Shown one piece after another: positions 19,077 to 42,574 of a stretch of 64,000 bases of DNA (position 1 is its first letter; the number at the start of each line of letters is the position of its first letter). This DNA is from Paragordius varius (Eukaryota > Animalia > Nematomorpha). Location: positions 10,664,001-10,728,000 of the forward strand of contig OZ176053.1 in the NCBI GenBank assembly GCA_964247055.1, in the 5' to 3' direction. The notes below the pieces were generated by a model that worked only from the letters and a program-made list of their open reading frames with translations, was not told the origin of the DNA and searched no databases. The translations under genes were made by a program, and so were the position numbers.

Positions 19077-20670
19077 CTACGGCGTTTTCCTAATTCGTAG
19101 TATTATAAGCATTTTGTGGAAAAAGGCTGAGTAAATGTTTGCATCGAAATACAATGGAATTATGGATGCGTACATAAAATACATGAAATCGAATGCAATC
19201 AATACGTTTAAAAAGACACGGAATCTAAATCGTTCTATTGAGGGAGGCATTTGCCGGTAATGGCTCCCTACCGCCATGAAAAGAATGTCGGGTATTATAC
19301 CAATGCAATAATATATAACTAAAACCGAATTGGCTTGATAACTCTTTTCATATTTGGACAATGATGAAGTATACTGTACGCGCCTGGTAGATTTTGAGGG
19401 CGTTGTGGTAATAAATAAACGATTGTTACTACGCACGGTTGGGCTACACTGTTTTTCTCTGCGTTTCATGATTTGAATAGATTTACCGCCAAAACTTAGC
19501 AGGCACATTGTTGGGATGATGAGTGAAATTATCATGATTGTGTTAAAATAAAATAGACTAGAATTACCTCTAGGTGTGTAATAAAACCATTTTTTGTCAT
19601 CGAGAATACATTGTTGTATCCGTCTCTCATGATTGAAAACGCCATAAAAGGTAAAAGTTATCCAAAAAATGATAAATGGTATTGCATTAACATATTTGTT
19701 TTGCTTGATTTTCAGGTATTTTATGGGATATACTAAGGCCATATACCTATAATTTGTCATACAATATCATTTGAGTTTATAAAATTATTATTATTCATCG
19801 GTGTTAAGATGCAAACAATTATGCTTACAAATGTTTTTTATAGTTACATATAAATAGTAATTTGTACGGTTTTTTAAACATCAAAATTAAAATAGATTTG
19901 ATGTTTATTAACCGGGATGGTATTAAATATTTGCTAAAATATTAGCTGGTATCAGCGGTTGTGGACTATTAAAATCCTAACGGAGACCCGAAAAATTTCT
20001 GATTTAATATTATAAACATTAATCCGTTCTCAAACAAAATAAAAGTTTGACGTTTTTCTGATAGTTCCTAAAAAAATTACTGAAAAATTTAAACGTTTTG
20101 TATAACCGAATTTATGAAACAAAATAAAATATTTCATACGCTTAATAATTTATATAAAAATCCCTAAAACAATATTACCTACCTATTTATCATGAGGAAA
20201 GCGAAACAATAATGTGATGTAACGTACACCGTTTTAGCGATCATATCGTTGATAATGTCGATTAGTATGGAAATGTGCGTGGAATTAACAATAAAATCAT
20301 AATAGAATGGAAAACTATTTTGTACCCGTGCCATTATACATATGACAGTGATAATGTTTAGTATTGATATATAGGTCCAAAGGACATACGTAAAATTATG
20401 CCACATATCTCTTATATTAGTTTGCAGGATAACTAGGAGAGCTGTATTCAGGCATAAAGCTATAACACACAATAAACTGATTACGACGAATAGGTAAAAA
20501 AAGAAGGTGGAATTAACTTCAGCCGGGGGACATTCGTAAACCTTTGTGGCAGCTAACAAGGGGAGCAACATATCCGTCAAATTTTTAACGTTGCCTTTAG
20601 GCTTGTACGTTATGTTATTACTAATGTTATTAAAAAGCAAATTTTTATTCAAATCATCAATTAATGTCAT
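19077..20670 (-). CDS. Divergent class-A-like 7TM receptor, paralog 1 (exons 20670-20183 and 19746-19077)
   Basis: Seven hydrophobic segments across two exons. A phase-2 intron splits the Arg of INR|YMALVYP (DRY equivalent). TM1 LCLN, TM6 IGIIPD, TM7 IIPLY. Confidence 0.85.
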
Positions 20671-22212
20671 TTTGATAAAGGAAGTGAGGTATACTTTTAT
20701 AAAAAATATATCTGATCTACGGATTTTATTGGCACAAGTTCAATACTATTAATCAAATAATCAATATCTTTAGTCCAAAAAAATTAATTAAGGTTGGGGC
20801 TGATAAATTCCTCATATAACGATATGCCAAATAAATTACTAAACCTACAGATTAATTAGTAAATAAGGTGTCATGAGTATTATTTTTGGTATATTTCCTA
20901 TTTATACAACCTCGTTTTGAAATTACACAGCAAATTTATTAACCGGCTTATTTCTTTTAATGGTTTGTATTTAACCAATGTCTCACCCCATTTATTAAGA
21001 AATTTAAGCGCAGAAAACTCTTCGCACAAAATTGTGTGGTTGCTTAGCATACGCAGCTTCTCATACAATTTTATAAACAAATTTATTTCAGCAATTCATC
21101 ACAATTAAATTTTATTAATTTATATATAATCAATTTAGGTTCTATCGATTTTACTTTTATATTTAATATATTTATAAAATAATTTTTATTTTTTAAACCG
21201 AGTAACCCTTTTGTAATATGGACTTTACATATTTCGCTTTAAATGGGCACATTTTTTTGTTTCATATAAACAGCTTTTTTTGATAAAAGCAGACTTCAAA
21301 TACCAAACAGCTGATTTAAATAAAACAATCTAAAATCCACTATCGTTTTTTATATTTCCTAATTAGCAATATGACAAAAAAGCGAAAAAGTTTGTAAAAA
21401 CTTGACAAAAGTGGTCTTTGAGATTTTACATATTCTATAAAATAATTTTTGATGTGAAATTCATAGAGCGTATGAGAGGCAAAACCCATTTTTCTGTCCA
21501 AATTGCTAAATAACCCAAATTTTAGCCTTATTATCAAAATACACAATATTTTAACACAAAAAATGAAATAAAGGCGCCGATAAAGTTTATTAAACTTTTC
21601 TCAAAATAAAATTTATAAAAATTAATTTTAATTATTTTTATTAAAATAGGAGCAATTTGTTATAGAACTCCAGCTTTAATAGTTTTTAAATGATACATCT
21701 ATATGGCCCGGGGAATTCATTTACCCCACATTGGTTTGAAATATTCAACTAATTCCTCTGGGGTAGAAAGTCAGGCGACGTATTTAAAATGACTAACATA
21801 AATTGCTAAAGTCCCGATCAATCTTGAAAAATCTAAAATATTTGTTTATGGAAACTAAATGCATATAGATTAAATTTGTTTTAATCCTTTTGATATTAGT
21901 TAATATTAGATAATCAACCAAAATTTAATTTTAAAAACTTAGTTGATTTTTACTATCGACTAAGCGGATCAACATTGTCACTTACAAAATTAGAAACGAT
22001 TTTAAAGCAATTCAGAAATATATTTTTTCGAATAACGGGAGAATCATTATTATTTTTTTGCTTCATTTTCGTCAAATGGAAGCAAAATTATAAATGATAC
22101 CGGTATCCATACTGGATAATGATAAAACAGGTTTTTGTGCCCCATTTTTTTATGGTAAAGTAATTTTCGGTTTCCTTTTTTTAATTTTCAATTATTATAA
22201 CATCGTGTCCAA

Positions 22213-22460
22213 AAAATTATCCTGAAATATATATATTTTTATATATATATATATATATAATGATAGGAAAATAAATCAGGATTATCATGGACCTTTTGGT
22301 TTTGCCTTTAACAAGTGTTTTAAATTTATTTTTACTTTTGTGGTAACTGCTCCATATCAAAAAATGACAAAATAGCACATTTTAAAAATCTTTGGTGAAA
22401 AAATGCTTCATTCCAAAAAATATCACTAATTTATATCATAAACGTATATAAAAAGTAAAA

Positions 22461-22495
<35 letters not shown>

Positions 22496-23385
22496 GTATA
22501 TATTAGATGCTCCGAAAGTCCCACATTTTTTGCCCTTCTAAAATGGCCTATCTCTTAAAATAAACACAAAAATGCCAAGATTGCGCAATAAACTTTAAAA
22601 TTAATGTTAAATTTTGATTTCAAAAAATTTTTTTCCGAAAAATGAATAATTTGATTAATTTACAGCAAAATTTTGTGAAAGTGTACTTTAATCTATTTTG
22701 AGACATGGCGGAAACGGTATAAAAGCGCTTTAAGATATTATAAAAACACTTTTTTTGATATAATTGGTGATGCTGAATATTTCCATTACCTCATTTTGAT
22801 TTAACTTTCCTATTCTAAAATTTATCTTTAATTAAATTATAATTTTAAAAAGTCACCTATTTCAAAGCAAACATTATATAAAAAATTTTTTATATCTTAG
22901 GGTTTTTTATACCGTTTTCATCATGCCTCAAAATAGTATGAACTACGCATCTACAAAATTTTGCTATAAATTAAATTTTTAAGCAAAATATCCATTTTTT
23001 TGAAAAAATTTTTTTTATGTCAAAATTTATCATACATTTAAAGTTTTAGTGCGTTTGCATTTCTTTTAAGAGAACTAGGCCATTTTAGGAGAGAAAAAAT
23101 TGGGACTTTCGGAGCATCTAAAAATAGAATGTTATACAAAATTGTTTTGTTTTTTATATGTTTTGATATATTTTAGTGAAATTTTCTGGTTTTTAAATTG
23201 TAGCTTTCACCAAAAATTCTATTTAACATAATGTAGAATTTTGCCATTTTTTGATGTGGAGTAGTTACTATGAAAAGTGTAAACAGCTCAGCTTTCTTAA
23301 ATCACTTGTAAAGGCCAAAACCAAAAGCACCATGATAATCCTGATACATTCTCAACAGAATATATATATTTTATCAGGATATTTA
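22213..23385. mobile_element. Diverged foldback/long inverted-repeat element (about 1.17 kb) with (TA)n tracts
   Basis: TAGATGCTCCGAAAGTCCC (about 22504) pairs with GGGACTTTCGGAGCATCTA (about 23102-23120). ATTATCATGG (about 22281) pairs with CCATGATAAT (about 23330). The centre is near 22810. A related fragment lies at about 43100. Confidence 0.7.
22463..22491. repeat. (TA)n microsatellite (others at about 22225-22260, 54655-54684 and 55663-55686)
   Basis: Direct reading of dinucleotide runs. Confidence 0.9.
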
Positions 23386-23976
23386 TAACGCCTTCGGATG
23401 CCGTGTAATTTTTTGAGGATGTGCCGAGAAGACACTTGCATAGTTTCTTTTATCTGATAAAAAAACCAAACTCTTTTGTATCCAATTAAAAAAACCACAA
23501 GGAATCTCTTATAAAAGTTAAGAATTTGATCTTTCCTCTTATTTCGCCACCCAAACTTAAATTAAAATTTGTATATAAATTGAATGGTATAAACCGTTTT
23601 TGGTTCCGAAACAGTTTTAAAAAATTATGGCAATGGCTTTACGAAAGCGGTTCCGATTACAATTCTTGTTTCTCACATATAGATGCACCCTGATTGAATT
23701 TTTAAATATATATTTTATATTTTTAAGAGTACTACTGAAAATGAGTTTTAATTTTTATTGTTTTGCAATTTATCTAATCATCCAATATTATTAAAAAAGG
23801 TGTTAATACATTAAGTGTTCTGTCCTATATTTAAACCTAAAGCAAAAATTTTAAAAATTAAAATATTTATGTATAATTTATATATCAATAATATGATATC
23901 ATAGAAATCATGTTTACACAATAACTCCAATATATAATTAGGTTAAGTGAGAGGTCTGCTAAATCTTTGTCTCATA

Positions 23977-26949
23977 CTAAAATGGACTTATATCTCTAGG
24001 TTTCCTCACTCTCAAAATAATCATTGCTTTATGGGAAAATGTTTTGTAAACATTGGCATCAAAATAAATGGGTATAATGGTTGCATATAACAAGTAGACA
24101 AAATCAAACACCAATGCTGCATCCATGAAGTTGCGTATCATAAAACCCCTGTCGGTTTGTGTCTCACCATAAAATTTCCCCAAGATCAAAAATAATAGAT
24201 CGGGTAATATACCGATGCAGTAATAAACTAAAAGAATAATATTTGATTTGTAACTCGTTTCAAATTTGGTAAAAGACGAAGGTGTTAACGAAATCCTTGA
24301 TGCAGGTGTTAAAACTTTGTCTTCTAAATTTATTAATGCATTGGAATTACGCGCATACATTTTTTTCATTAGTAAAATCGATTTTATACCAAATCCTAGC
24401 ATTAGCGCCGTTGGAATTATCAGTATAACTATCATAGATGTGTTCAGGTAGAAAAAATTTGATTGGCCCCGCGGTATAAAGTAATACCAAATCTGATTTT
24501 CCCGAATGCATTTTTGCACCGCTCTTTTGTAATTGAATAGGGTGTATACAATTAAAATGCAAATGATTATAAATAAAGGAATAAATTTTATGTATTTTCG
24601 TTTCAATCCATTTTGGTAACGTACCGGGCTAACGATTGCAATATATCTAATATATTAACCATAATATATACGTATATATATTATATATCAGGTAATTAGC
24701 TTATTTCCAGAATCGAGCTTTTATTGAACAGGGAACTAGTTTCTATGGGTTATTACCAATAATCGGGTTAAAAATTTTAAAAGCTATCTGATGCCGGTTG
24801 AAACGGCCATGTCGCATTATTAAATTTTTAAGAGGTTCCATACTACTATAAAATAGATGGTTACCAATATCTTTTTAAAAATGTTCAAAATCGTTGTTTC
24901 ATGCAAAAAATTATATAAAAATGTTTTAATTGTATAAATGTATAATTTATTTTGTGACATAAAAATTTGACTTAGAACCCGAAAATAACAGGGATTTCAA
25001 TGTTGAAAAAACATTCAGATTTACCTGTTTTTTAAAGAAATTTCGTATAAACTTGTAAGTTGAAAAATAATAGTAAATAATTATATTCTTAAACCATATA
25101 AATTTGATTTGATATATTTTAAATTATATTTTGTTTAACACTTCGTTCAAATGGGGGTATCTAAATAACCCAGGGAATATTTAAGTTGATATTCTTAAAA
25201 AATATTGAAAGAAACGGTTCTTTAAATTTATGCTTATATCCTAATATAAATTATATAAATAAGGCAAAAAATCTAAATAAAATTTAGATTTAGAAAAAAA
25301 GTTCCGTATCAAACTACTTGGACGCCATTTTTAACATCATTTTTGCAAAATATCGTGTTTTTTTATTCTAAGCCTAAAATTAAGTTTACTTCTTTATTAA
25401 AATCATATTTGACATTGATATAAACAGAAAAAGTGGTATATTTTGCATTATTTTTATATTTAGCTTCAATAATATTTTATTTTAAACAAGCCTGGGGTAT
25501 CCAACTACCCCAATTTGAATTAAAGGACTGAAATGAATGTGTTGTATCCAAGTGTTAATTAGGGCGATGATAATGAGCTACTAAGTAGCAATATGGAGAA
25601 ACCAGCACTGGCGCAAAATACATTTTTTAGATATCTCTTGCTCATAAGTAAGGTTTTAAATTATTCTTAGGCCAAAAATACCGCTCCAAGTAGTCTCATC
25701 TCATTTGAGATTTTCATCATTAATTTAAGCCTCTTAAATTTAAACTTAAGGATCATTCACCAAAATATCTGGTTGACTTATTGACAAGACCCTTAATTTT
25801 TTACCTATAAAAAATATACGGTATAGAGTTTTTTGTGTTATATTGAAGACAGTGATGATGGACAAATTTGAAACTGTGGGATTTGTCTGGTTCACCACAC
25901 ACACAGTGTAAGAGGCTACTATAATATCAAGCCCTTTTTAAACCATAATTCATTGAAACAAAGTTATATCATATATACTGTTCGATAGTAAAAAACATAT
26001 AATGCTTTTTTATGATAACATTTGATTTTATAATTGATTGTTGTTTTAATTGGATTCAAATGATATCAATTAGTTTAAACTTACAAAACTGTAAAAATTC
26101 AAAGCTTATCTAGTTTTAGATAATATATTTTACAAAGACAAATTTCACAGTAGCATAACAAGGTTGGAGCTGGGCAATAACACCCCAATTATTCTTCCAT
26201 AAAAACGTGAAAATGTATTAAATTGTTAAATAACATTATTAATATTTAGTAAAAAATCTCAATCTATAAAGCTTATTTCAGAGAAAGGGCGCAAAATTTG
26301 CGATTAAGTAGTTACCAAAAACGTCGATCCAGCTTTGTTAATGACTTGTTAGTACAAAAAACATTAAAATCATCTATCATGATATACTATATATTACATT
26401 AAATTTTTAAGTACATGTGATTAATTATATTTTAAACCTTATCATCATTAGTAAAGCAAAGCAGTAGTGGACACTCACGTATGCAGTTTTACTTATTGTG
26501 CCGTTTATTATACCAAATACCAGTAGGGGATACGATTTATTAGCCATAAACCCAAAATAATATGGAAAGTTGTTTTCCAACCTTGCCATTATAAGAATGA
26601 GGTTGATCAGATTGAGAATAGAAATATATATCCAAACGACGTAAGTTGGTCTTTCCCATATATCCTTTATGTTGGTAGTGAATATGACAAAAAAAGCTGC
26701 ATTCAAGCACAATCCACTAAAGCATAAAAGGCTTATAGTAACAAGAGTAATTAAAAACAATCTTTCATTCATATGGAATGGAGGGCATAGAGAAATTGTT
26801 TTGTTATCTGAAAGAACCATATATTGGTCGGGTATAATAGAAAAATTTGAATTTAATACATAGGGGATTATTAAGTATGAGGTATTTAAAGCATTGTTAT
26901 GATACATTTTCAGGAAACTTGTGGATTTTAATTTACAAAAATATGTCAC
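23977..26949 (-). CDS. Divergent class-A-like 7TM receptor, paralog 2 (exons 26949-26438 and 24646-23977)
   Basis: Collinear with paralog 1. MMIR|YIAIVSP has the same phase-2 intron. Conserved YCIGILPD and FDFVYLLYATIIPIYFDANVY. Confidence 0.85.
25139..25554 (+). mobile_element. piggyBac-like MITE (family A) in the intron of receptor paralog 2
   Basis: TTAA|CACTTCG...ATCCAAGTG|TTAA, with asymmetric subterminal inverted repeats. Confidence 0.8.
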
Positions 26950-27699
26950 GGTAGTTTGTTATTGCGTTAATAAAATTAGAAAAATAAATTAATATCCAAT
27001 ATCTCAATATTGGGTATTATGCCAACCAATTTACCTTTGATATTATATTTTTTCACTGCAATATCAATCCATTTAATATAAATTAATTAATTATTGATTA
27101 AGAAATAGTTCATACAGATTGAGACAAGCATATTTTGTCATTTATTTGTGATATTTATGCCTATATTTTAACACAAATTCGGGAATCTGACCATTTATAA
27201 AATTTAGACAAAGATTGTCAAATTTAAAAATTTCTGTTTTATCGTATGAATTTAAGTATAGTTAGATTAGGTGTGGTTAAATTAAATAGTTATATCTAAT
27301 ATATTGGCAAAATTTTATGGTATTTTACACGTTGCGCACCAATAAATAATTGTTTTTATATATTTCAAAAGCTAAAAAACTCCAGAATATAAATATCTAA
27401 ATGTTAACTGCGGTTAATTATACTATTAGCCAAAATTAAAAAAAACGCATATAGTAGATTAGGATAATATAAATAAATACAACGGAAACGCGTCGCCTAA
27501 ATTTTATTTGTTAACATGCGTCATACAGATAATCCTAAACGTGAATTGTTATTTATTTATATTTTACATTTTGTAAATAGTCTTAAAATCTCAAAATAAT
27601 TAAACTTAATCGTATTATATATTTGAATTGAAAAAACGTGCGATTATGCGGATTTTATTTAATTATTATATATGCACTGTATACTAGGGGTAAGAAGTC

Positions 27700-28235
27700 A
27701 TGACCGGAAAACGAAAAGAAAACAACGAAAAATATGCAGATGATCAATTTATTCAGACTTTAGTTAATCCGACATACAAACACAGACAAATCGGGTTCGC
27801 TACAATGTAGCATATTATTTTTACCAAAGTCGAATTTTGTGCCCAAAAAAAAACATTTGCGGTACGCATTGCTTTTCTATTCCATTAGAAGGAAAAGGCA
27901 CCTTAAAGGCTGGTGGATACAAAACATGATTCATCGATTAAACATGTTAAACATGGAAAATATAGAACTTTTGATTTCAATAGATAGGGTTTTTTTCTCA
28001 TTTGAGAGGCTAGCATGAGGGCTAGGTTTAATAGTATGACTCGAACTATCCAAATTATCTACACCATTGCTGATCTCAACAGTTTTTTGTTTCTCGTGCG
28101 AACTAGCATCAAAGGACACATTTGTCGTGAGTTTTAAAAAATCTGTCATCATTGTCATTTTTATGCTTATTGCGTTTTCCTTCGCTCTTTTTCGTTTTTG
28201 CGCTCCGCTTAAGTTTGGTAAGAAATAAAAAAAAT
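27700..28235 (-). pseudogene. Possible hAT (ZMYM/TTF-type) transposase N-terminal relic
   Basis: The frame upstream of ORF 27931-28158 reads LSGAQKRKRAKENAISIKMTMMTDFLK, resembling hAT transposase N-termini. It is followed by a stop-ridden W..Y......F.C.C-like segment. Confidence 0.35.
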
Positions 28236-28323
28236 CATTTAGAATTAAATATTTTGTTATAAAATTTTTACAACTATACGATTATTGTGAAAACATGATA
28301 CGAATCCATAAAAACTTTTAGTT

Positions 28324-28899
28324 CAGAGGTCGGTAACCTTTCCTTTTGTGTGGCCTCCAATGTAGTGACCATAATATAATTAAAATGAGTAAACATCCAT
28401 GACGTGCTGTCGCTAACATGGGCATAATTATAAACCTATTTTACAATGAAAGGACAGCTTTTGTAAAGCTTTCTCTATTTCGCTCGTCTGCATGCTCACA
28501 TATTCGTTTTTAATATAAACACATTGTCAACATATGCGTGGAATACGAGCTTACCTAGAAATAGCAGCGGGGAAACTTCTTAAATATCTAATTGTATAAA
28601 AGTTATATTTTCAGAATTCGGATAAATAAAATTTTAACACCTGTTAAGTCAGAAGAATAAATATTTATTACGGTATAATGGCTTTTTGAAATTATAACAG
28701 CGCTTCGAACCGGTCCCAAAAAGTGGAACTAGAATTGAGCTCTAATTTAAAAATGGAATCGTTTCCTAAAAGGAACCAGGTTCCGGCTAGGTCTGATAAA
28801 TATGTATAAATGTACTATTTGAATGATATATGAATGTGTGGACCGCCGAGATTTTTAAATTTTGAGAATGGCCTGCTGAAAAAAATTGCCGATCCGTGT
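28324..28899. mobile_element. hAT-type MITE
   Basis: Termini CAGAGGTCGGTAACC and ATTGCCGATCCGTG. The flanking 8-mers TTTTAGTT and TTTTAGTG match at 7 of 8 positions as a TSD. Confidence 0.7.
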
Positions 28900-30449
28900 T
28901 TTAGTGTGTGGTGAAAGTTTATATTTCATGTTTTAGAACTAAAAATAAATTTGAAAATAACATGAATTAAAGGTTGATAACATTAGAAAAACAAGTCACA
29001 TTATTGTATATCAGCTAACAAATGTTGGCCAAATCAACTTTACAGTAAAGTACGTGAAAAAACAATCATTCTATAAAATGTAATGAATTTCATTCGCCAT
29101 GTATGCATTGAACAACTTTTTTTACAAAATTATTGTTATTTTTCATATTTTGCTGTAATATGAATTGGCCAACATTAATGTGAGTTGGATTACTTTAAAT
29201 TGCATATTGTATAATCAAAATAAATAAATTGAGATTACTTGTTAGGGAGTTATCAAACTATATTAAAAAACAAAATAAATTTTCACGCTATATGAATATA
29301 TTATTGCAAATGTTTTATTTGTAATTATTTTAATTTAACAGAAGCAAAAAAATTACATCTATTAAAATTTTGTGAATTCTCATGAAACTATAATACTATA
29401 ATTTTTAATAACAGAATAAGTTAAGACTTGAAAATATATAAGCTTCACTTAATTTTTGGTGTCAACTATCTATACTCATTTATTTATTTTTTAACTATTT
29501 TTACTTTTTTAAGGTGTTAACTGGAGAGAATTTAAAGGTGATTAATTATAATCTTATAATAAAACTGCTTATTGAGACAGTGAAAAATATGCATTTTTTT
29601 GATTTTTCTTCCTTTCAATCAAGAATAAATCTCTTTATTCTTTGCCAGTATACTTACAATTAGGCAATCATTACTTACATATCTGTAAATAAAAAAAAGT
29701 AATAAATTTGGGCCGCCCGCCAAATAGAAAGGGGGCCTAAATTTAAAATAAATAGTAAAAAAGGCCCCTGTTTTGCCTTGGTCCCCCGCACTGCTCCCCC
29801 TAGCTCCCCGTAGTTTCGCCACTGCTTTCAAGCCTATTAACTTGTCGAGATAATATATTCCAGTTTTAAAGGTTATTTAAGTAATCATGGAATTTCAACC
29901 ATGGAACAGAAGACTTGGAGCTAAAGGGCTAATAGTTTTGTGAAAGATGATTGAATCGATTCAGCAAATAAATAATAAACCACAAAAACAAGACGTGAAT
30001 GATTTATTCTTAGGTGAATAGACCATGGTCTTTTAACTTGAAATCTCTTCCAACATCGAAAAAACAAGAATTTGGCGTTGTTGGGCATTAGGTTGGAAGA
30101 GGTGTTATTTATATTTAAAAATTAATTTACATTATAAAATGTGGATTATGTACATAATATGATATATTTATGTCTAGGAATGTGGTTTTCATTAAAATTT
30201 ATATTTAACATTTGTGAATTTTTTTTTTATGTTTTTAATGCCTAGGATTGCCATCTTTTTTAGGCGAAAGCCATTACCCAAAAATATATCCTTAGTTGAG
30301 CCATGCCTCAAATGCATGAATTTGCTTTTAAACAAAATTAATAATTAATACTCGAACTTTTGGCGCAGTAACTAATATAAATCTTTTTTAATTCCTATAC
30401 ATCTGACAAGCAAGCCTTCGTTTTCAAAGAAATGGGGTTGAATGTCCAT

Positions 30450-31010
30450 GTTTTTTTCACGTGTTTCTGTTTATGACGGGCCATTACCACTCACGGTTTG
30501 AAATTGATTATTTTTTGAAAATGCAAGGGTTTGCATGGAGGAAGAGGGGACGCCATCACGGATTCATGCACCGGGCGTCAGAAATGCAAGTTACGCCTCT
30601 GTCTTTGTCTGGTGGGACAGGAGTGGGATAGTGCACTATAAACTTTGAAATACCGTATAACCTTTATTACTTAACGCTCTAATTAAGAACTACGCATTGA
30701 TCATAAAACTACCGGAATTCTCCATAAGACATGACAAAGTGATTTTCATGACTTCACACAGCAAAACCAATGAAAACCGCTTCAATGGGAAATTCTTCTG
30801 CATCCGCTGAACTCTCTTAATGTGCTGCCATCTGAATAATACATCTTCGCAATGGGGCACGCCTTGGTAGAGCAGCACACCAATAATTTTGAAGCCGTTA
30901 GAAAATAACTTAAAAAAGGGTTAGCCGCAAATTGCAATCAATTTTTTGGTGGCAATCATACAGTCACTGATAAATGGGCGAATTGTTTAGAAGCCTTTGG
31001 ACAACATTTT
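30450..31010 (+). pseudogene. Degenerate Mos1-like mariner transposase (C-terminal half)
   Basis: Fragments VWWDRSGIVHYKL, RHDKVIF, WEILLHP, FAMGHALVEQ and CLEAFGQHF match the Mos1 motifs VWWDQSGVIYYELL, WEVLPH, FASMGHALAEQ and CVASDGKYFE. Stops and frameshifts are present. Confidence 0.85.
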
Positions 31011-32784
31011 AAAAAAATAAATTGATTTCCATCCAAATTTATTTTTACCGAAAAACCGGTAGAGATTTATGCCAACACCTAGTAATATATAGAGTAACCC
31101 CGATGTGTCGCGTAGAAAAAAAAGGATTAAACCTTAAAAAGAAATATTAGTTGATTTGCACCAAAGCGTTAGATTAAAATTATAACCAAACCTCCAATAA
31201 TCATAATAAAAATATTTTTTTTGTAATGTTAGACTTAGAAAAACTTGTATACACTCAGTTTTTTAAGTTAGTAATTATATCAGAAAATCGTGATTAAAAT
31301 TTTTCACGCCATTTTGGCTTTTAGGGACGTGCCTAAATCAAAAAATTGCGTCAATAGAAGTTTTTCACTGCATCAAATTGTATAGAAAAATTATGTATCT
31401 CAAATATTGCAGAGGTTTTAGTACTGCTTCCGCTTTGATGCAAATCATTTGAAAATTCTTTTTATGTAAAGACTAAACCTTTTTTTAAACGATATTGGGT
31501 AAACGCTATGATGGTTAAAATAAATATTAAATCTTTTACCGCATGATTGAAAGTTTAAATCCAAATTTAGACTGCGATTGTTTAGTTTTGATTCTCATAA
31601 TTTTAAGGACCTATTGAAAAAAAATGTGGAATCAATATTTTGCGTTTTTGGTTGATGCGCTTTCCTTCGTTATATTTATTTTTATTAGACTTAATATACG
31701 ATGTAAAGGCGATTCTCTAGAGCTAGTGGAAATGATATAACCGCATTGATTATTTTGATATTTATTATTTTGAAGTTTTAGCTATTAAATATATGGTTTA
31801 TAAATTTTATTTTTGACTCCCATTTTTGCCGAATAGTTTCATCCAAAAAACCTTTATTTTTCAAAAATTTGAGCATTTTTGTGTTCTAATATTTATGTCT
31901 CCCTTATGGTAAAATAGACTGATACTTGTTTTATGTTATCGTTTTCACATTATCCTACCCTACATTGAATAAAAAACTAAACGCTTTAATCTCAATTTAA
32001 AAATTGACAAATATATTAATTAGATGGTTTTTAGCTTTCATCTGTGACTTTGAAATTTAATTTAGGATTGAACATTCTTAATATCAAAATTATTTTAGGT
32101 CAATAGGTTACTTAAAAAAACGCCATTCATGTGGGCTTCAGAAAGCTCGTAGACCACTGCATGTCTCATAGTCATTAAATAATGTCATCTCCTTAGCCTT
32201 ATTCATAATATTATTGTTTTAAACTTTGTAAATCCTATTTCCTACTTTACTATTGGATGCCCCCCTTCTGATTTTACCCTATATATTTAATTATCTCAGT
32301 GTGTTAGCCATAACTTTTATCTAACCTAAGCTTTAAGCTAAATATTTCCACTTTTGTTTTTCTCATGATTTTTTGAGCACCCAAGAATCTGTTTATGCAC
32401 CATTGATTTTTAAAACTATAAAGCGAATTAAAAAGTAGAATTTGAATATACCAAATTTTTTGCAAAGGTACAGATTGTGAACCTGCTAACTATCATCATA
32501 GACAAAATTATTATGTTATATGCAAAATTAATAAAAATAATATATTTTGTTATAAGTGTAAAACTAAACTATAAATGTTTTATAGAGAATCCTGCTTTTT
32601 AATCGTTATTTTCCCACATAATATATTTACCATATACATTAGTTCTTACCGATTTAATTAACATAAACGTCAGCAGATAGTAGGCTAATGATTAAATTGT
32701 ACGACTTCATCATCTGACATTCAGCGACCAATACATACAAGTTAAGATCACCAAAAACTAGTCTCCTACTTTTATTCATTAATC

Positions 32785-33638
32785 ATGTCAAATTTTGTGC
32801 CTGAAAAAGAACGTTTGCGGCACAATGCCATCAGAAAAAGACGCTGATCGTTTGCAAATGGCTGCTCTATCGATTAACACGTGTAAAACATGGTTTCGTA
32901 TCAAAAGTTACGATTTCATGAGGAGGAGTTAGACGATCTGGAAGAGGTATTGAATGATGTCAACTCAAAAACAGTTTGCAGTAGAAGCATTACATGTATC
33001 ACAAAAATAATCTATAGACTACTAACAATGGATAAGACCGATAACTCGGTAAATCGGTTCCACACAATTTGAATGAGCGTCAAATTTAATATCAAAAAAT
33101 GACCTGTGAATTCTGCATTAACGTCATTAAAAAAAATCATTTTTCATCGGACGGATGATTAAAAATGGCTGTTTTCGTGATCTCAAAGCGGGAAAAATCG
33201 TGTCTTTCACCTTGCCAAGCCGGTCTATCAACACCCAAAATTGCTTTGGCATGAAGACAATGTTTTGTGTATGGTGGGACCAAAGTGGTGTGATATTTGA
33301 CCAGTGAGGCTTCCCGCTAACAAATACCTAAATTAAAATTTTGAAATATCGAAAAACAACGTGAATTAGCCAGTCATGGCAAATAATTTTGCTACATGGT
33401 GCTTCGTCTCATACAGCCAAATCAGTGAGCACCTCGATAGGAAATATAACCGCATCCGCTAAACCCTCTTGATCTGGCGCATTGGAATAAGTTACTTCGT
33501 ATCAGTAGGACACACCCTCGCAGAGCAGCACTTTATTAATTTCTAAAACGTTGGAAAATGGTCAGTTTTTTGTACGGCATTCTATTACCTGAGAGAGGAG
33601 CAAAATGTGTAGAAGCCGATGTATCATATTTTGAATAA
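32785..33638 (+). pseudogene. Degenerate Mos1-like mariner transposase with internal deletions
   Basis: Starts MSNFVPEKERLR (Mos1 MSSFVPNKEQTR), contains FGMKTMFCVWWDQSGVI and ends CVEADVSYFE*. Multiple frameshifts. Confidence 0.88.
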
Positions 33639-34432
33639 AATAAAAAATTGACCTTTTAAAATTACATGTGTTTATACGAATACCGGTATTTACTTATAAT
33701 AACTACAACTAGAAATTATATTAATTTAAGTGTGTACCCCATTCCTTATTATGAAACTCAAAACATCAAAAAATCAAGATGTATCTAGACTGTCTTTTAT
33801 AAATATTATATTTTTATAATTTAAGTTTTGTCTCTATAATATCATTACTGTATATGTGTCTAGTGTTTTTTAAACTCTATTTAACCAGATTCGCATTATT
33901 TAAAAACGTTGCGCAATGTGCAGACTAAAACTCTTTAAAAAGACAATAATGTTATTTCTCATTCAATTTCCTATATATACCCCATAAAAGCCTAGTTATA
34001 TATTAAAGGTAGATGACTAAAGTTTGTAATATAAACGATTTGGAGGATGCCGTTAAATAAGGCAAAAAATAAATAATATATATTTATTTTTTCCAATTTT
34101 TTTCCTAGCTAAATCTATTGACGATGCCTTTGGCAAAAATTGGAATATTAATTTTATTTACCTTTTGTATATTAAAATTACTTCAACTTTTTATCTTATC
34201 TATATTTTTAATAAAGTATTAACAAAAACTAACTGCTAAAACAAGTTCCGGACATTAGGCAGACTCTGGGACCAACTTATTTTTAAATACACCTCATGTA
34301 TATTAAAAAATAACAACATAATTAATTTAATATATAGTAAACGAATAATCAATATAAATATAAATTATAAAATTGCGCGCATATTGCTTCAATTATTTAA
34401 GTTAAGGGGTTTAATATTATCCCATTTACCTA

Positions 34433-36255
34433 TCATACTGGGCTCACATTCCCCGGCTTTTTAATTCGCAAAATAATCATTACTTTATAAAAAAACTTTT
34501 TATAAACGTTTGCGTCATAATATACGGGCAAAATGGTGGCATACAAGAAGTATAGGAAATCAAACACCAATATTACATTCATAAAATTGCGCAGTTTAAA
34601 GCCCTTCTCCGTTTGGGGATAGCCAAATTTACCCAAAATTAAAAAAATGAGATCGGGTATTACGCCAATGCAGTAATAAACTAACAAGACAACATTTGAT
34701 TTGTAACTCGTTTCAAACTTGGTAAAAGAAGACGGTTGTGCGATTGTAGGCAAAACACCCAATGTGTGTTGTCTAAGACTTTTATTCGACCTCCTTGTGT
34801 TTAAAGCAGGATTCGAAACACTTTGGCTATTTTGCATTTTTCTCATTAATAAAATGGTTTTTATTCCAAATCCTAACATAAGTAACGTCGGAGTGAGAAG
34901 TATAAAGATCATTGTAGCATTAATTAAGAAAAAATTTGTTTGTCCAGGAGGTATAAAGTAATATCTAATTTGATGCTTTTGAATACACTTTTGCACGCCT
35001 CTATTGTAATTGAATGAGGTGTAAACAACCAAAATACATACTATTATGGATAAGGGAATAAAGTTTGTAAATTTGTGTTTTCTCCCATTTTGATATCGCA
35101 CCGGGTTTACAATCGCAACATATCTAAATATTATAAAATGTACAGTTCAAATCACCTATTATTTATATATCATACCCATTTAAGGAGCCAATTAAAATTT
35201 AAAATGTAATTTAGGTATTGGGCCAAAATTAAAAATCTTTTTTATGCCTTTTAAGCTCATTATTCAAAAGAGTTTTTTAGAAAATGTAATAAAATCTTTA
35301 TATCAAACTTTTTGCATGCCATTTTTTTCTTTAGGTTTTTTTATATGCAACACGCACATATAGGTATATTCAAAAAATAAATAATGGACAGCTTCTAATT
35401 TATATTTTACTGGCAAATATTTGATATTTATTGACTTATATATCGGCTGCTCGTTTAAATCTTTTGGATCGAAAATTCGTGACTTTAGTTTAAACTGTAA
35501 AAAATTTGGAGGTCTTAGATATTACAGAAGAACAGGGTCTGATAATTTTTAAAAAAATTTCATATCCGTGGTTTATTTACAATTAATTAAGGTATAAAAC
35601 ACGCCCAAAATTTGTCTACAAAAATTATAAAATATTAAGTTTTTCAAATATGAAACTAATAAAAATAATCACACACACCAATAGACATCCTAGGTTGTAA
35701 TATTAAACAAATAGCTCTCGTTACTGTATTTGATTCATTTTATATATTATATTTGAAATAGAATTACTATTCTCATACCTTATAATCATTAGCAGTGCAA
35801 AGCAGTAATGTACACTTACGTAAGTGGTTTTGTTTAATGTTCTATTTACCATAGCAAGGACCAGAAAGGAATAGGGTTCGTTGCCCACGAATCTAAAATA
35901 AAATGGAAAGTTATTTTCCAACCTTGCTGTAATAAGTACGATACTGATAATATTAAGAACAGAAATATAAATCCAAACGACGTAAGTTGGTCTCTCCCAT
36001 ACATCCTTTATATTTGTGGTGATAATGATTAAAAAAGCGGAATTCAGGCACAATCCACTAAAGCATAAAAGGCTTACAACAATGAATATAATTATAAAAA
36101 AATTTATTCATTTGGAATTCATGGCACGGGTATATTATTTTCTTGTTTGAAATATATGTTGAAAACTCATCCAAAGTTTGCGAAAAATTTGAACCTGATC
36201 TGAATAAAAAGGGTATATGTATTTGAGTGATATTTAAGACAGAGTTATGGATCAT
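34433..36255 (-). pseudogene. Divergent 7TM receptor, paralog 3 (exons 36255-35779 and 35123-34433), with a frameshift in exon 1: pseudogene or homopolymer sequencing error
   Basis: Same architecture as the others (MIIR|YVAIVNP). ORFs 36058-36255 and 35721-36053 join only with a frameshift at the A7 run 36096-36102, which is 2 nt short relative to paralog 2. Confidence 0.8.
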
Positions 36256-36459
36256 TATAGAAAATCAATTATGAAAATGCGTTAATAATAATACGAGCTC
36301 CAAACTACTATACTTTAATTAATATTCAATAAAAGATGAAAACACAAAAGAATGCCAACCAATTAAAATTTAATCAAACAGTAATTATGCGTGACAATAA
36401 ATAGCATTAAAAGACGTTTATATGGCTACGTTTCCCCAGGAATGTCGACTTATCAATAA

Positions 36460-37250
36460 TGGCTAATACTGCAATTATGATTGCGCATAGCCTAACGCGT
36501 TTTTAATTAGCTATTAGGTCTAACCTCAAGAGATGTAAATGGGCTGGAAAAAGATGTTGGTGACCATTATTATTTAAACCTCCCTTGTGTAAAGGTGAAC
36601 AGTTTTTTTAGTAGGAAATTTAGCTTAAAATCGAACCTTTGAAATTTAATGTGACTAATTCGTTCCATTTATCTCTTTCCTATCGAATTTCCTGTAATTA
36701 TGGCTTCCATTTTTTCTTTTTCCTCGATTTTTCCAAAATTAAATATTTATCTGTATGCCTTTTTTCTAAATGAACTTATTGATTTAGTTATTTATCATTA
36801 ATAAAGTTTTGTTGTTAATATATAGTTTTTTTATAAACCACTTTATTTTGAACAACCTTACACCACATTTCGAACGCTGTCAATATTTCATCGTCTATTT
36901 TTCTGAAGAATATAACTCTACACAGGAAGACCATGTATATAAAACTTACCTTAATTTATAGTAAGTTCTTTACTTCACATTTTTTTTCAGCATATTCATT
37001 GCTGTCTTTATTAACGCTATAACCTTATGGGGGAAAGACCTTCATTTATACCTGGTAACTTACAAAAAGCCTTTCAATAACTACTTTTACCCTATAATTT
37101 ATCCTTTTCCAAATAAAAATTATCTTAGTCTATTAAGTATATTTGAAATCTACATTTTGATTTTAGATGGATAAGATGTTTTGACGACTATAAATATTAG
37201 GAATGTGTAAGAATTACGATATTTGAAACACGAGACATATATGCAAAAGA
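36460..37250 (+). CDS. Probable small multi-exon hypothetical gene, divergent from receptor paralog 3
   Basis: Open segments (GLTSRDVNGLEKDVGDHYYLNLPCVK|LKIEPLKFNVTN; ...YKTYLNLY|IFIAVFINAITLWG) joined by canonical 29-30 nt introns (GTGAAC..TTTAG; GTAAGT..TTTTCAG). The full CDS was not assembled. Confidence 0.3.
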
Positions 37251-37549
37251 ATGACGAATGGCTTTAATTTATTTGCTAAACTTTTGTTGAATGGGTGGGC
37301 ATAATACAGCGACTTATGAACAATTTGCTACGTTTTGAAATGTTTCTAAAATAAGAACAAATTAATCCACCTCATATAGAATCTAGCGTTTATAGGGATA
37401 TTTTCATCTATTTTTTTGAATAACAACATGTAATGCATAATTGAACCGGTTTTCAACCATACACATTTTTAAAATTTATTTTTTGTACTACATCCATGTT
37501 TTACCTATTTTGGGATATTTAAAGATGTTTTTTCGGTAAATTTCAAAGG

Positions 37550-39657
37550 TAATACTTTTGCGCAAAAAATTTTAACATTTTTTTAATGAGATAGCTTATA
37601 ACCAGCGATTGATTTGCCGCAAAACGCCCTAGTTTTTGCAAGATGAAAATCGAAATTAGGAGTAATTAAGGATAATTAAAAAGATAATGATGAAACTTGA
37701 GATATTAAGATTTATTAACGTTTTCTCTGATATTAATAGCTTTAAATTATATTAGGGTTTTAATTAAAGATCAAAGAATCGTGTTTTTTTATAACATACT
37801 TAAAATATAAAAATTTTATAAAATTATATTATTATTTATTAGCTTAACTCGCTATTAAAATAATATTAATGCCACTCGAGTTTTTTGCATTTTCTGATAT
37901 TTACTATCATTTTAACAGTAAATCTGAAATGAAAATTCCTAAGAATTTAGTATAATCTGATTTATTATGATCATGCGCCCTTTTTATCAAATTTTACTAA
38001 AAAAAATTTTTTTGAAAATATACAACAAATACCATTTGTAATATATCATTCGAAAGAGTAATAAAATATCTATAAAATGCATACTAATATGTTTTACATC
38101 GATAGTTAATATTAGACATAGGAAGCGACAAACCCGCAAAGCGATAGCGTTTCTCTTAATTAATATATTTTAAAACTAATGGATGAAAATAGCTCAAACT
38201 TTATATAGATAACAATGAATATCCAAAAAAGATAACACAAAAAAGTTTTTTAGATTAAAACACTTATTTATTCCTTTTATATCATTCAAAACAGCCATTT
38301 TTTAATTTTTTGATTTTTACCATCACATCAATATTTATTATTTTTGAAAGGCTAATAATTTCAAAATTATAAAGACTAGAAATATATTCAAGGTATTATG
38401 ATCTTTTATAATCATTATTTAATTAATTTACGCTTATAACTATGCATTATAATATTAGGTAAAATAATTATGATAATAATAATTTTATTGAAAAAGCAAA
38501 CCAAAAACTTTTAAAAATATTTTTTAATTTTATACTAATGTAACCCTAATTATTATATAAAAATAATTTAAATGAGTTTGTCTGTGAAAATTTTGACTTA
38601 TTTAAGGGGTTGAAATTTTGATCACACAAACCCAAACTGTTACATCAGATTGATTTAAATGACTACCATTCGAAAGATTCAGTTTTTTGCGCTTTTCCGT
38701 ATAAATACATGGCTCTATATCTAAAATTAATTCCAAAAATTTCGAGTTTAATGTTAAATCGACAAAGATTTTCGATTAAAAGAAGTAAAATAATTCTTAG
38801 TGTTGGACCAATTTTTTTAAAAAATACTATTTATGTACATTACTGAAATACACTTTAAATTTACAATATGACGCTCAAAAAAGTAAAAATTTGTTGTCTA
38901 AATTAAAATTAAATATTATTTTTTTTTCATTTTTGTCATCTGGTTTATGAGTTTGTGATAAATTTACTGTTTTATTTTGGAAACCTACACGAGCGGGAGT
39001 TATACGAAGTATATAATATACATAATTTTTACAAGTAGTGAAATATCAACCAAAAATCCGTACAAATCCCAGTAACATGTTTGTTTTGACACACTTCGAC
39101 TTGTACGGATTTTTGGTGGATATTCCACTACTTGTTAATCCTATTGTATATATTTGTATACTTTACTCCCGCTCATGTAAGATTCCAAAATAAAACAATG
39201 AATTTACTATAAACTCATAAACTAGATGACAAAAAAATCAAAACATAACATTTTATTAATTTTATTTTAATTTTTACCGTATAAAATATGAATGTTAAGA
39301 TTTTAATAGTGACCTAATAAAATTAAAAAAATTGTTTTAACATAGTGTAAAATTTTTGTTTATTAATGTTAAAGAAACACGATTTTTTGATCTGAGTTTT
39401 AATCAAAGCTCTAATGTGATCTAAAGCTAGTTATAAATTGTAAATATCAGATACACAACAAATTTAATATCTCAAGTTTTATCATATTTTTTTAATTATC
39501 CCTAATTTCTTTTTTGCCCAATTTCGAATTTCAATCAACATCTCAAAAACTAGGGCGTCAACAAATATTTTGCGGGAAATCAAATTACTGGTTATAAGCT
39601 ATCTCATAAAAAAAATTTTGTTAAAAAAATTGACCCTCTTTTTTGCACAGAGTGTTT
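37550..39657. mobile_element. About 2.1-kb element with 260-300 bp degenerate terminal inverted repeats
   Basis: GAGATAGCTTATAACCAG (about 37588) pairs with CTGGTTATAAGCTATCTC (about 39588). CGCCCTAGTTTTTG pairs with CAAAAACTAGGGCG. AATCGTGTTT pairs with AAACACGATT. Confidence 0.65.
38860..39290. repeat. Hairpin (about 200-bp arms, 35-nt loop) nested in the 37550-39657 element
   Basis: CCAAAAATCCGTACAA pairs with TTGTACGGATTTTTGG. GAGCGGGAGT pairs with ACTCCCGCTC. TTTGTCATCT pairs with AGATGACAAA. Confidence 0.8.
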
Positions 39658-39927
39658 GTAAGATTTGAATAATATTTTGTTTGATCAAATAGTCTCCTTT
39701 TCTTACACATTTTATTTGACCGAGTGTTATTTACCGTTTATGATTTAATTAAAATTTAATGAACTATCGTATTATAATAATATAAATAATTAGTCATATA
39801 TTATAAAAAATTTGAACAACGATATATGTAATGTCATACATATTAGTTAAACAAAATTAATTTATATTACTGGTGTAAAATTAATTAGAGCGTGCGCTTA
39901 AAATGGTAACAATTATTTTTTTATCGT

Positions 39928-42574
39928 TCATAATGGGCTTATTTCTCTGGGTTTCTTCACTTTTAAAATAATCAAAGCCTTGTGGAAAAATGTTTTGTAA
40001 ACGTTGGCATCAAAATATATGGGTATAATGGTCGCATACAAAAAGTATACAAAATCAAACACCAGCAATCCATTCAGAAATTTGCGCAATCGTATCTTGC
40101 TTGTTCCAGAATTATAATCCTTGCTCAGACTTACAAAAAGTATATCGGGTATCATTCCAATGAAGTAATAAATTAACAAAACAATATTTGACTTGTAACT
40201 AGTTTCAAACTTTGCAGTAAAAGTCGGTGTTATCATATTACCCAGGATGGGTGTGGGCCTTTTCATGCTTGTAGGATGCTGACTGTTTTGCATGTTTTTC
40301 ATTAATAATATCGATTTTATACCAAATCCGAACACAAGTATTGGAGGTGTAAGAAGTAAAAAAGTTATCAGCGCCTTGAGATATATGGAATTCGATTGGC
40401 TTCGTGGTATGAAATAGTACCAAACTTCGTTTTTCTGAATACATTTGTGGATGCCTTTATTATGGTGTAACACGGTGTAAACCATAAGAACACACAAAAT
40501 TATGAAAACTGGAATAAAATTTATATATTTTTTTTTTCTTCCATTTTGATAACGCATAGGGTACACGATTGCAACATATCTATAATTAAAAGTGTTTTAT
40601 ACAAACAGAACAAATTTTTTTAGCATCTTTTGGAGTTTCCATTAATCAAAATTATCCTATTTAAGAGAAAAAAAAATTAGACTTCTATTCAAAGTAGCGG
40701 ATCCAATGAGCCCCTCCGAGTTTTATGTGCGGCCCTAAAAATTGGCAGGAACTAGAAAAAATTGCTATATTCTGTTTTTTTGATAATTATATACGAATCC
40801 CAAGCCATTTGTGTTAGACACCGGTACTCTAAAACGTTTAAAACTTGAATCTGCAGACAGTATGGTCCATGTATCGGAATATGCACGATTATTGGTGTAA
40901 TCAGACTTTTTACAATTTTAATTTGTTTTTTAGGATACATCGTGCGTTCCTTAAATATCTGAAAACGAGCTATCTCAAAGATCGTTTGATTTGCTTGGAA
41001 GATATACCATTAGTATTAGCAAAGAGAAACTTCTTTTTTAACGATTAAGTTTTGATCTTTGAAATTAACCCTGATATCTTTTATATATCGAACTTATTAT
41101 AATTTAAAGAGATTCAGTTTTCTACATAAAAACATTTGTCTGCATCTTTGTTATAATTTGTTATTGTTGAATAATTAGAGGCGAATATTTCGAAAGACTT
41201 TAATAAAAAGGTTTTATATTTAACAATTTAGAGAAAGACCATTTTATTATATATGTTCTTGTACTTAAATTAATTGATGATTTTCAGAAATGGCAATCAA
41301 AAATTCAAGAATGTTTATAAATTATATTAATTTGGTTTTTTAATCAAAATGCAATTGTTAAATATAGAGTCTCATAAAAGTGACTGGATCCTTACATATT
41401 GAAAAACCTTTATTATGAAACAAACTCATTACCCTTCATTTTTTGTAGACGATTACATTTTGGGGCACCCAGAGCTTAATCTTTTAAATAAAATACCGTT
41501 TGGTTAAATTTTAAACATTATTTTCTTTGATAGAAAAGTTATATATACCATTTACAATTCAAATTCACCCTTGAATATTTGAAATTTACCCTCGAACAGT
41601 TCTAATTCACCCTTGAAAAATTGAAAGTCACCCTGAAAATAAATTATGTGTTTTCGGGCTTAAATAATTTATTATTAATATGCAATATATCTTTATGCCT
41701 TAGTTCATAATTTTTTCAGTATTTAATCTTTTTTTTAAAAAATATAGAAATTATAGATATTTAAATCTTAAACACATAATTTATTTGAGGGTGATTCGAA
41801 TTGTTCAAGGGTGATTTTGAATTGTTCAAGGGTGAATTCGAAACGTAAATGGTATATTACAATTTAACTTCAAACGTTCAAAATCGGGATAGCTCAAAAC
41901 CTGATTGAATAGATTTTAATATCACTTAATATAAAAAACATGTTGGTAAAATGTAGTATAAACCCTTCTCAAGTTAATTATTTACAGTTTTTAACCATTA
42001 CATACATTAATTAGCCTGTTGTATCGGCTTTAAAATCCAATGAATAAAAATGACGACACAAAGTTTTGAATGATTTAAAAGTTTTCAAATAAAGTGTTAA
42101 TATAAACCTCACTATTACTAATAGGGCAAAGCAATAATTTTGACTCACGTATGCAGTTTTTCTGACCGTGGCATTCATAATAGTTAACACCAAATGATAA
42201 TAAGAATTATTCGCCATAAAACTGAAATAAAATGGAAAGTTATTTTCTAGCCTAGATACGACAAGGATGATGATTATAAGATTGAGAATTGAAATATAAA
42301 TCCAAATCACGTATGTTGGTCTTTCCCAAATATCTTTTATATTCGTTATGAATATGACAAGGAATGCCGCATTCAAGCATAATCCACAGAAGCATAAAAA
42401 TTTTATGACAATAATTATAAGTAGAAAATAGTTTTCGTTTATATCGGATGAGGGACATTGTTTTATCATATTATTTGATAATATAGAAATTTGGACAGAT
42501 GCCTGCGAAAAATTTAAACTTAGTTCTAACTGACGTATAATTTGTGTAGTATTAAAGTTAGAATCAAGAGTCAT
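39928..42574 (-). CDS. Divergent class-A-like 7TM receptor, paralog 4 (exons 42574-42108 and 40579-39928)
   Basis: VIVR|YVAIVYP has the same phase-2 intron. Conserved YFIGMIPD and FDFVYFLYATIIPIYFDANVY. Confidence 0.85.
41544..41856. mobile_element. MITE of the TATACCATTT-terminal family (family B) in the intron of receptor paralog 4
   Basis: Ends TATACCATTTAC...GTAAATGGTATA, with AATTCACCCTTGAA subrepeats at both ends. A sister copy lies at 54043-54311. Confidence 0.8.

Follow-up and report, generated by a model that had tools for sequence, protein, structure and literature searches.

A tandem array of four receptor genes

The window considered here, a stretch of 64,000 nucleotides on contig OZ176053.1 of the horsehair worm Paragordius varius (Nematomorpha), holds four co-oriented pairs of open reading frames (ORFs) on its minus strand within positions 19077-42574. 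The four genes, called A to D in the following (Table 1), can with good confidence be regarded as members of a small, old family of G protein-coupled receptors (GPCRs) of the rhodopsin class (class A) whose sequences are highly divergent. The family is under purifying selection, and no relative of it was detected elsewhere.

The exon junctions were read base by base and re-derived by script. In all four genes exon 1 ends in AG, the intron runs from GT to AG, and exon 2 begins with A or G followed by TAT. The intron thus interrupts an Arg codon at the end of the third transmembrane segment (TM3) between its second and third bases (phase 2), and the split Arg is followed by the sequence Y-(M/I/V)-A-(L/I)-V-x-P-x-(K/R)-Y. 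A first-pass annotation of this DNA had described four co-oriented two-exon paralogues sharing one phase-2 intron in the TM3 Arg codon, and this description was found to hold at four of the four junctions. The predicted products of genes A, B, and D have lengths of 385, 379, and 372 residues, respectively. These lengths result from exon arithmetic only; searches, alignments, and folding were all performed exon by exon. Hydropathy analysis places two strong segments (TM1 and TM2) and a weak one (TM3) in exon 1 and four further segments in exon 2. The layout of the proteins is completed by an extracellular N-terminus rich in sequons (glycosylation), a variable third intracellular loop (ICL3), and a short helix 8 followed by a tail.

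In the assembly the reading frame of gene C is broken, and the lengths of its exons sum to 1 mod 3. The frame starting at ATG 36255 and the frame that leads into TM1 overlap at a run of seven T, where the alignment with the paralogues is continuous. Apart from this shift the gene is open, and its ratio of nonsynonymous to synonymous substitution rates (dN/dS) against gene B is 0.16-0.23. The shift is either a very recent lesion or a homopolymer error of the assembly. A micro-intron that would rescue the frame was considered and rejected, as no GT...AG is present around the run and the paralogue alignments pass straight through it.

Judged by their alignments, the paralogy of the four window genes is far beyond chance: even the most distant pair, A and D, is matched by BLASTP with E-values of 3e-57 (exon 2) and 8e-35 (exon 1). 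The mean pairwise identity among the four is highest in the first intracellular loop (ICL1, 0.69), TM7 (0.68), TM2 (0.67), and TM6 (0.60) and lowest in the N-terminus (0.25), the third extracellular loop (ECL3, 0.27), and ICL3 (0.34). TM3 is average (0.52), except for its invariant cytoplasmic end YCFA.L...R. The divergence of the N-termini and of ICL3 noted in the first-pass annotation is thus found among the least conserved regions of the proteins. The strong conservation that it ascribed to TM3, TM6, and TM7 applies to the latter two, and in TM3 it is confined to the cytoplasmic end. The loops of the paralogues have the same length or differ by a single residue (+/-1), with the exception of the N-terminus, ICL3, ECL3, and the tail.

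Table 1. Positions of the four receptor genes, of the repeats in their spacers, and of the paralogues found elsewhere in the genome
Feature	Position	Strand	Remarks
Gene A, exon 1	20183..20670	-	ATG, N-terminus with NxS/T sequons, TM1-TM3; final AG = first two bases of the Arg codon
Gene A, intron	19747..20182	-	436 nt, GTAGGT...TATAG, phase 2
Gene A, exon 2	19077..19746	-	ICL2, TM4-TM7, helix 8, stop TAG
Gene B, exon 1	26438..26907	-	
Gene B, intron	24647..26437	-	1791 nt, GTTTAA...ATTAG, phase 2
Gene B, exon 2	23977..24646	-	
Gene C, exon 1	35779..36255	-	Reading frame broken in the assembly; 5' piece starts at ATG 36255, 3' piece is open from 36107
Gene C, T7 run (site of frame shift)	36096..36102	-	
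Gene C, intron	35124..35778	-	655 nt, GTATGA...TTTAG, phase 2
Gene C, exon 2	34433..35123	-	Open, 229 codons + stop
Gene D, exon 1	42108..42574	-	
Gene D, intron	40580..42107	-	1528 nt, GTTTAT...TATAG, phase 2; contains 21-bp tandem arrays at 41556-41639 and 41788-41842
Gene D, exon 2	39928..40579	-	
A-B spacer repeat	22249..23384	.	~1.1 kb, self-inverted (foldback-like), dispersed; dozens of copies, 66-73% identity
B-C spacer repeat	27993..29828	.	Two adjoining units, dispersed; at least 40 copies, 75-90% identity
C-D spacer repeat	37862..38900	.	~1.04 kb, dispersed; at least 40 copies, ~80% identity; local inverted duplications at flanks
Genes A-D	Window		A, B, and D intact; C frameshifted
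Gene E	C4:11.435 Mb		Intact
Gene F	C2:14.337 Mb		Intact
Gene G	C2:13.355 Mb		Intact
Paralogue at C2:11.60 Mb	C2:11.60 Mb		Exon 2 frameshifted; exon 1 4.8 kb upstream
Paralogue at C2:13.3186 Mb	C2:13.3186 Mb		Exon 1 fragment with stop, adjoins a retroelement ORF

Evidence for a class A receptor fold

From their sequence features, the encoded proteins very probably belong to the class A GPCRs. The sole Pfam family that recurs among the matches is 7tm_1, which was found in four of the seven exon 2 pieces (best E-value 1.6e-5). When the genome was searched in six frames with the same model (PF00001), exon 2 of gene C scored 26.1 bits, against a gathering cut-off of 30.5. The exon 1 pieces showed no 7tm_1 match in Pfam.

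The exons were further compared by hhalign with a target profile, which was built first from 19 ORFs of class A receptors encoded in this genome and later from 61 matched stretches of 49 ORFs. Exon 2 aligned to this class A profile with a probability of 96.6% and an E-value of 6e-10 in global mode and with 94% in local mode, and the reversed control reached 1.3-1.8%. The alignment extends from just after the DRY motif to the C-terminus and has Y-x-A-I-x-x-P-x-x-Y, the Cys of the second extracellular loop (ECL2), P5.50, and P6.50 in register. Exon 1 aligned to TM1-TM3 with a probability of 45.6% and an E-value of 3.4e-5 (reversed control 0.1%); here, G-x-x-x-N falls on G-N (N1.50), L-N on L-x-x-x-D (2.50), and the terminal R on the Arg of DRY. 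The neighbours of both halves in a protein language model point in the same direction, as all neighbour clusters with a Pfam assignment are assigned to a family of the GPCR_A clan, although these neighbours are to be read as leads only.

The intron itself also links the family to class A. A phase-2 intron in the codon of R3.50 also occurs in two canonical class A genes elsewhere in the genome: L068 (C3:6163600-6166500), which has an ERF motif and reads GAA AG/GTAATC...TATAG/A TTC, and L069 (C1:6229500-6233000), which has an ERY motif and reads GAA AG/GTAAAT. Because at least two canonical genes share it, the position of the intron is inherited within class A and does not mark this family in particular. 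In many other 7tm_1 matches of the genome, the break falls near model positions 126-133 instead. When both family profiles were compared by hmmsearch with the ORFs of 47 loci of the same genome, nearly all of them GPCRs, the best E-value was 0.04, and no nearest subfamily emerged.

Several observations weigh against this assignment. None of the exon pieces attains the gathering score of Pfam 7tm_1, although the pieces were scored singly and the cut-off is meant for the whole protein, and the profile-profile probability of exon 1 stays below 50%. A profile search of solved structures in the Protein Data Bank (PDB) returned nothing for exon 2; exon 1 matched only P2Y2, over TM1 and with a non-significant E-value of 0.1. 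AlphaFold2 (AF2) run on the exon 2 alignment gave helices that fit TM4-TM7 and helix 8, but with a predicted local distance difference test (pLDDT) of 50 and a predicted template modelling score (pTM) of 0.29 the model is unusable. A Foldseek search of the PDB with this pLDDT-50 model found no match at E <= 0.001; the best template modelling scores (TM-scores), 0.44-0.48, belonged to GPCRs, with chains of TRPV1 mixed in near the top. The register of TM7 is ambiguous, most of the activation microswitches are replaced so that coupling to a G protein is an assumption, and the reading frame of gene C is broken as described above. Against these points stand the sub-threshold 7tm_1 matches, the in-register profile alignments with their reversed controls, and the shared intron, by which the earlier reading of the proteins as seven-transmembrane receptors of the GPCR kind is upheld; the Foldseek comparison that it had proposed as a check is the one without a match just given.

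Departures from the class A canon

When the family is compared with the class A GPCRs (PF00001, clan GPCR_A), the similarities comprise the seven transmembrane segments, N1.50, R3.50 followed by Y..(I/L)..P..Y, the ECL2 Cys, P5.50, P6.50, and helix 8. R3.50 and the Tyr next to it are invariant, whereas the residue that precedes them (3.49) is N, I, I, and V in genes A to D, respectively, and never D or E. Further differences are the replacement of D2.50 by N, that of Y5.58 by G within an invariant F-G-x-K, and an aliphatic residue or Met at position 6.48 (I/V/M/L) instead of Trp. Position 3.25 has no Cys. The ECL2 Cys is present, and its partner may instead be a conserved Cys located just before TM1.

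In TM7 the family has an invariant P-x-Y-x-D-x-N-x-Y, and NPxxY is not recognisable. 'DANVY' would be one candidate for its counterpart, but hhalign places NPxxY on 'A-T-I-I-P'. Counted from P6.50 in gene B, the Pro lies 44 residues away and the last Tyr 52; the corresponding distance in the canonical receptor L021 is 41, and this comparison does not decide the register. The lack of D2.50, CWxP, NPxxY, and C3.25 does not exclude the proteins from class A because many accepted subfamilies lack them too.

Several pocket positions of the proteins are conserved, with a basic residue at 3.33 in all eight members, N3.28 in seven of the eight, and an invariant D6.51. An opsin or an aminergic receptor was also considered and rejected, as no Lys occurs anywhere in TM7 and position 3.32 is A, S, N, or R, not Asp. 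The C-terminus of most members reads (S/T)-P-hydrophobic, an ending that looks like a class I PDZ ligand.

Relatives elsewhere

A word-indexed search of 5.8 billion proteins returned no relative for exon 1 or exon 2, and an exhaustive HMMER search of 1.84 billion representatives with exon 2 found nothing at E <= 0.001. As a positive control, a canonical sNPF/NPY/PrRP-type receptor of the same genome (L022:1309-2832) was searched and yielded 965 relatives. Among the named ones, the highest identity was that of 'neuropeptide Y receptor type 2-like [Gordionus sp. m RMFG-2023]' with 59%, followed by insect sNPF/PrRP-type receptors. As the control matches Gordionus, the searched protein collection includes an annotated hairworm proteome. 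The control receptor belongs to the same superfamily as the window genes but differs from them in having DRY, NPxxY, CWxP, and a full 7tm_1 match (195 bits) besides its 965 relatives.

The earlier proposal of an undescribed, lineage-specific family without a one-to-one orthologue in a known receptor family is in line with these searches, in which none was detectable outside the genome among the proteins searched. 'No detectable relative' is the correct wording here because the subfamilies within the genome are themselves only 35-43% identical and the control is only 59% identical to its Gordionus counterpart; other hairworms could have orthologues that have diverged beyond detection or that lack annotation.

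The best match of the control receptor by E-value was an 'unnamed protein product, partial [Ixodes hexagonus]' (2e-174, 48% identity), which outscored the Gordionus protein. This may be due to a long low-complexity tail or to contamination in that assembly.

Family size, history, and selection

A census of the 110-Mb genome with the exon profiles found only 8-9 loci, all of them family members (Table 1). Trees calculated for each exon alone recover the same two subfamilies, (A,E) and (B,C,(D,(F,G))), with the pair of B and C resolved only in the exon 2 tree. The array spans both of these old subfamilies, and the nearest kin of gene D, the genes F and G, are located on another contig. Synonymous divergence (dS) is saturated between the subfamilies, 0.6-1.8 within B-G, and 0.18-0.20 for the pair F/G. 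Wherever dN/dS could be computed, that is, wherever dS is not saturated, it was 0.13-0.35. By these sequence measures the family is small, old, and constrained and not fast-expanding.

The first-pass annotation had spoken of a local expansion of GPCRs in an otherwise streamlined genome. Neither part of that statement is supported: the family has only 8-9 old members with the closest relatives of gene D on another contig, and the genome is not poor in GPCRs, as the search with PF00001 gave 148 exon-level 7tm_1 matches genome-wide. The assembly has a size of 110.5 Mb in 44 contigs with a GC content of ~26%, and the window lies on contig 4. Published hairworm genomes measure 200-300 Mb, i.e., roughly twice that size (10.1101/2024.06.11.598342).

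Origin of the genome

The tandem genes had previously been connected with the myxozoan Myxobolus cerebralis, as receptors for host cues in the form of fish-mucus nucleosides. This explanation is so improbable that it can be set aside because the organism is refuted. Contig 44 (15.7 kb) is the mitochondrial genome, and its COX1 gene is open only when TGA is read as Trp. An AGR codon stands at the conserved Ser of the 'FSW' motif in COX1, which indicates the invertebrate code (table 5). In Cnidaria, including Myxozoa, table 4 is used and AGR encodes Arg. The contig further contains perfect zero-loop palindromes with arms of 208, 138, 136, 131, and 92 nt, and five of six are located inside open frames of table 5; coding palindromes have been described for the mitochondrial genes of Nematomorpha (PMC6649704). 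Palindromic repeats of 72 bp form an array on the same contig, at L019:770-1472 upstream of COX1.

Together with the control receptor, whose nearest named relative at 59% is that of Gordionus and is followed by insect receptors, the invertebrate mitochondrial code and the coding palindromes identify the genome as that of a horsehair worm. As it is not a myxozoan genome, the link to fish-mucus nucleosides falls. The 148 exon-level 7tm_1 matches likewise speak against Myxobolus, and all that can be named in favour of this origin is the GPCR-like fold and the P2Y2 match over TM1, the sole one to a solved structure. This match is non-significant and gives no support to a nucleotide as ligand.

Possible roles of the receptors

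In the proposed mechanism, an extracellular ligand would bind to a helical pocket lined by the conserved polar and charged residues (basic 3.33, N3.28, and D6.51), and the receptor would signal to a heterotrimeric G protein via the retained R3.50. By analogy with other receptor families, the sensing of an exogenous or conspecific chemical cue may tentatively be named as the most likely role, ahead of that of a receptor for a conserved endogenous transmitter. Such a chemoreceptor-like role is favoured because the family is restricted to one lineage, because four of its genes form a tandem array, and because the outward-facing parts of the proteins are the most divergent. An endogenous ligand specific to the lineage fits almost as well since the family is small, old, and tightly constrained.

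In its strict form, the sensory role would make the genes chemosensory receptors of larval or adult sensory cells that are tuned to host, water, or mate cues, an analogy-based explanation that falls somewhat short of being probable. It would agree with the lineage restriction, which extends to the lack of a detectable relative even in the annotated Gordionus proteome; with the tandem array and the two frameshifted copies and one fragment counted genome-wide; and with the concentration of divergence in the N-terminus, ECL3, and ECL2. The canonical microswitches are lost, as they are in the nematode serpentine chemoreceptors, and Srw, Srx, Srsx, Srt, and Srv are among the closest clusters in the language model. 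Like the family described here, the nematode families Srw, Srx, Srsx, Srv, and Srt (PF10324, PF10328, PF10320, PF10323, and PF10321, respectively) are lineage-restricted, divergent, class A-like, and without these microswitches, and the nematode genes often stand in tandem. They have tens to hundreds of members, however, as compared to the 8-9 loci found here, and none of the Pfam models of nematode chemoreceptors (Srw/Srx/Srsx/Srv/Str etc.) matched the exon pieces even at E <= 10. The duplicates are also old (dS from 0.6 to saturated, except for one pair) and under purifying selection, so that a small old family without any sign of rapid birth and death is seen where a chemosensory role is proposed. 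A common upstream motif was not found either, as no 8-10-mer is shared by at least five of the seven upstream regions (400 bp each).

The constraint that counts against chemosensory receptors would suit receptors of endogenous, fast-evolving, and lineage-specific ligands (a neuropeptide, a lipid, or another hormone) that have drifted beyond recognition, which we consider possible but less likely than the foregoing. The loop lengths are strictly kept, ICL1, TM2, and TM7 are under strong constraint, dN/dS is low, and the family is small and stable. Furthermore, the intron is common to peptide-receptor-like class A genes, and the basic residue at 3.33 in all eight members would suit an acidic ligand. 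Transmitter receptors, on the other hand, are usually traceable across the Ecdysozoa, as the 965 relatives of the control illustrate, and for this family none was found; the D3.32 of amine receptors is absent, and without a Lys in TM7 the proteins are not opsins. It is improbable that the genes encode seven-transmembrane proteins that are no longer GPCRs (a scaffold, a decoy, or a channel-like or otherwise non-canonical protein) or that the array is decaying to pseudogenes. D2.50, D3.49, Y5.58, W6.48, and NPxxY are indeed all replaced, and both gene C and the paralogue at C2:11.60 Mb are frameshifted. Yet the replacements do not vary among paralogues whose silent sites are saturated, R3.50 is invariant as well, dN/dS is 0.13-0.35 with the pairs of gene C included, and six loci have intact exons.

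Returning to the sensory role, a more specific proposal can be made, which for the present seems rather doubtful: the genes could represent a chemoreceptor clade restricted to hairworms that has a rewired activation core (N2.50, G5.58, an aliphatic 6.48, and P-x-Y-x-D-x-N-x-Y) and serves a step of the life cycle. If this were true, such receptors could act in the host finding of the larvae or in the sensing of mates or water by the adults, and the clade would be a first molecular handle on the sensory biology of Nematomorpha.

Significance

Lineage-specific divergent GPCR families are common in invertebrates. What is described here is not a new kind of system; it is very probably a new and strongly divergent subfamily of class A GPCRs in a horsehair worm. 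Few animal phyla have been studied as little as the Nematomorpha, and the worm is a parasite known for manipulating the behaviour of its host. In the searchable literature on hairworm GPCR or chemoreceptor repertoires, nothing was found. A small and constrained family that was detected only in this genome is a concrete candidate for deorphanisation and for a study of stage-specific expression. Moreover, the family adds to the natural examples of class A scaffolds in which R3.50, P5.50, and P6.50 are retained and nearly all other activation microswitches are replaced, and it offers a useful comparison for rewired GPCR activation.

Spacer repeats and neighbouring features

Each of the three spacers of the array contains dispersed repeats with dozens of copies in the genome (Table 1), in agreement with the repeat-rich spacers described initially. 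Besides the 21-bp tandem arrays in the gene D intron, another such array is found upstream of that gene at 43761-43995, where it is the source of the repetitive 'FIDWENV' ORF at 43690-44016. Directly downstream of gene A, the minus strand contains an ORF of 602 aa (17135-18943) that is rich in Lys and hydrophobic at its N- and C-termini; a Pfam search with it gave no match at E <= 0.1. The C-D spacer repeat also has a copy at C4:11438111-11439218, just upstream of the paralogue E, whose exon 1 lies at C4:11436589-11437023.

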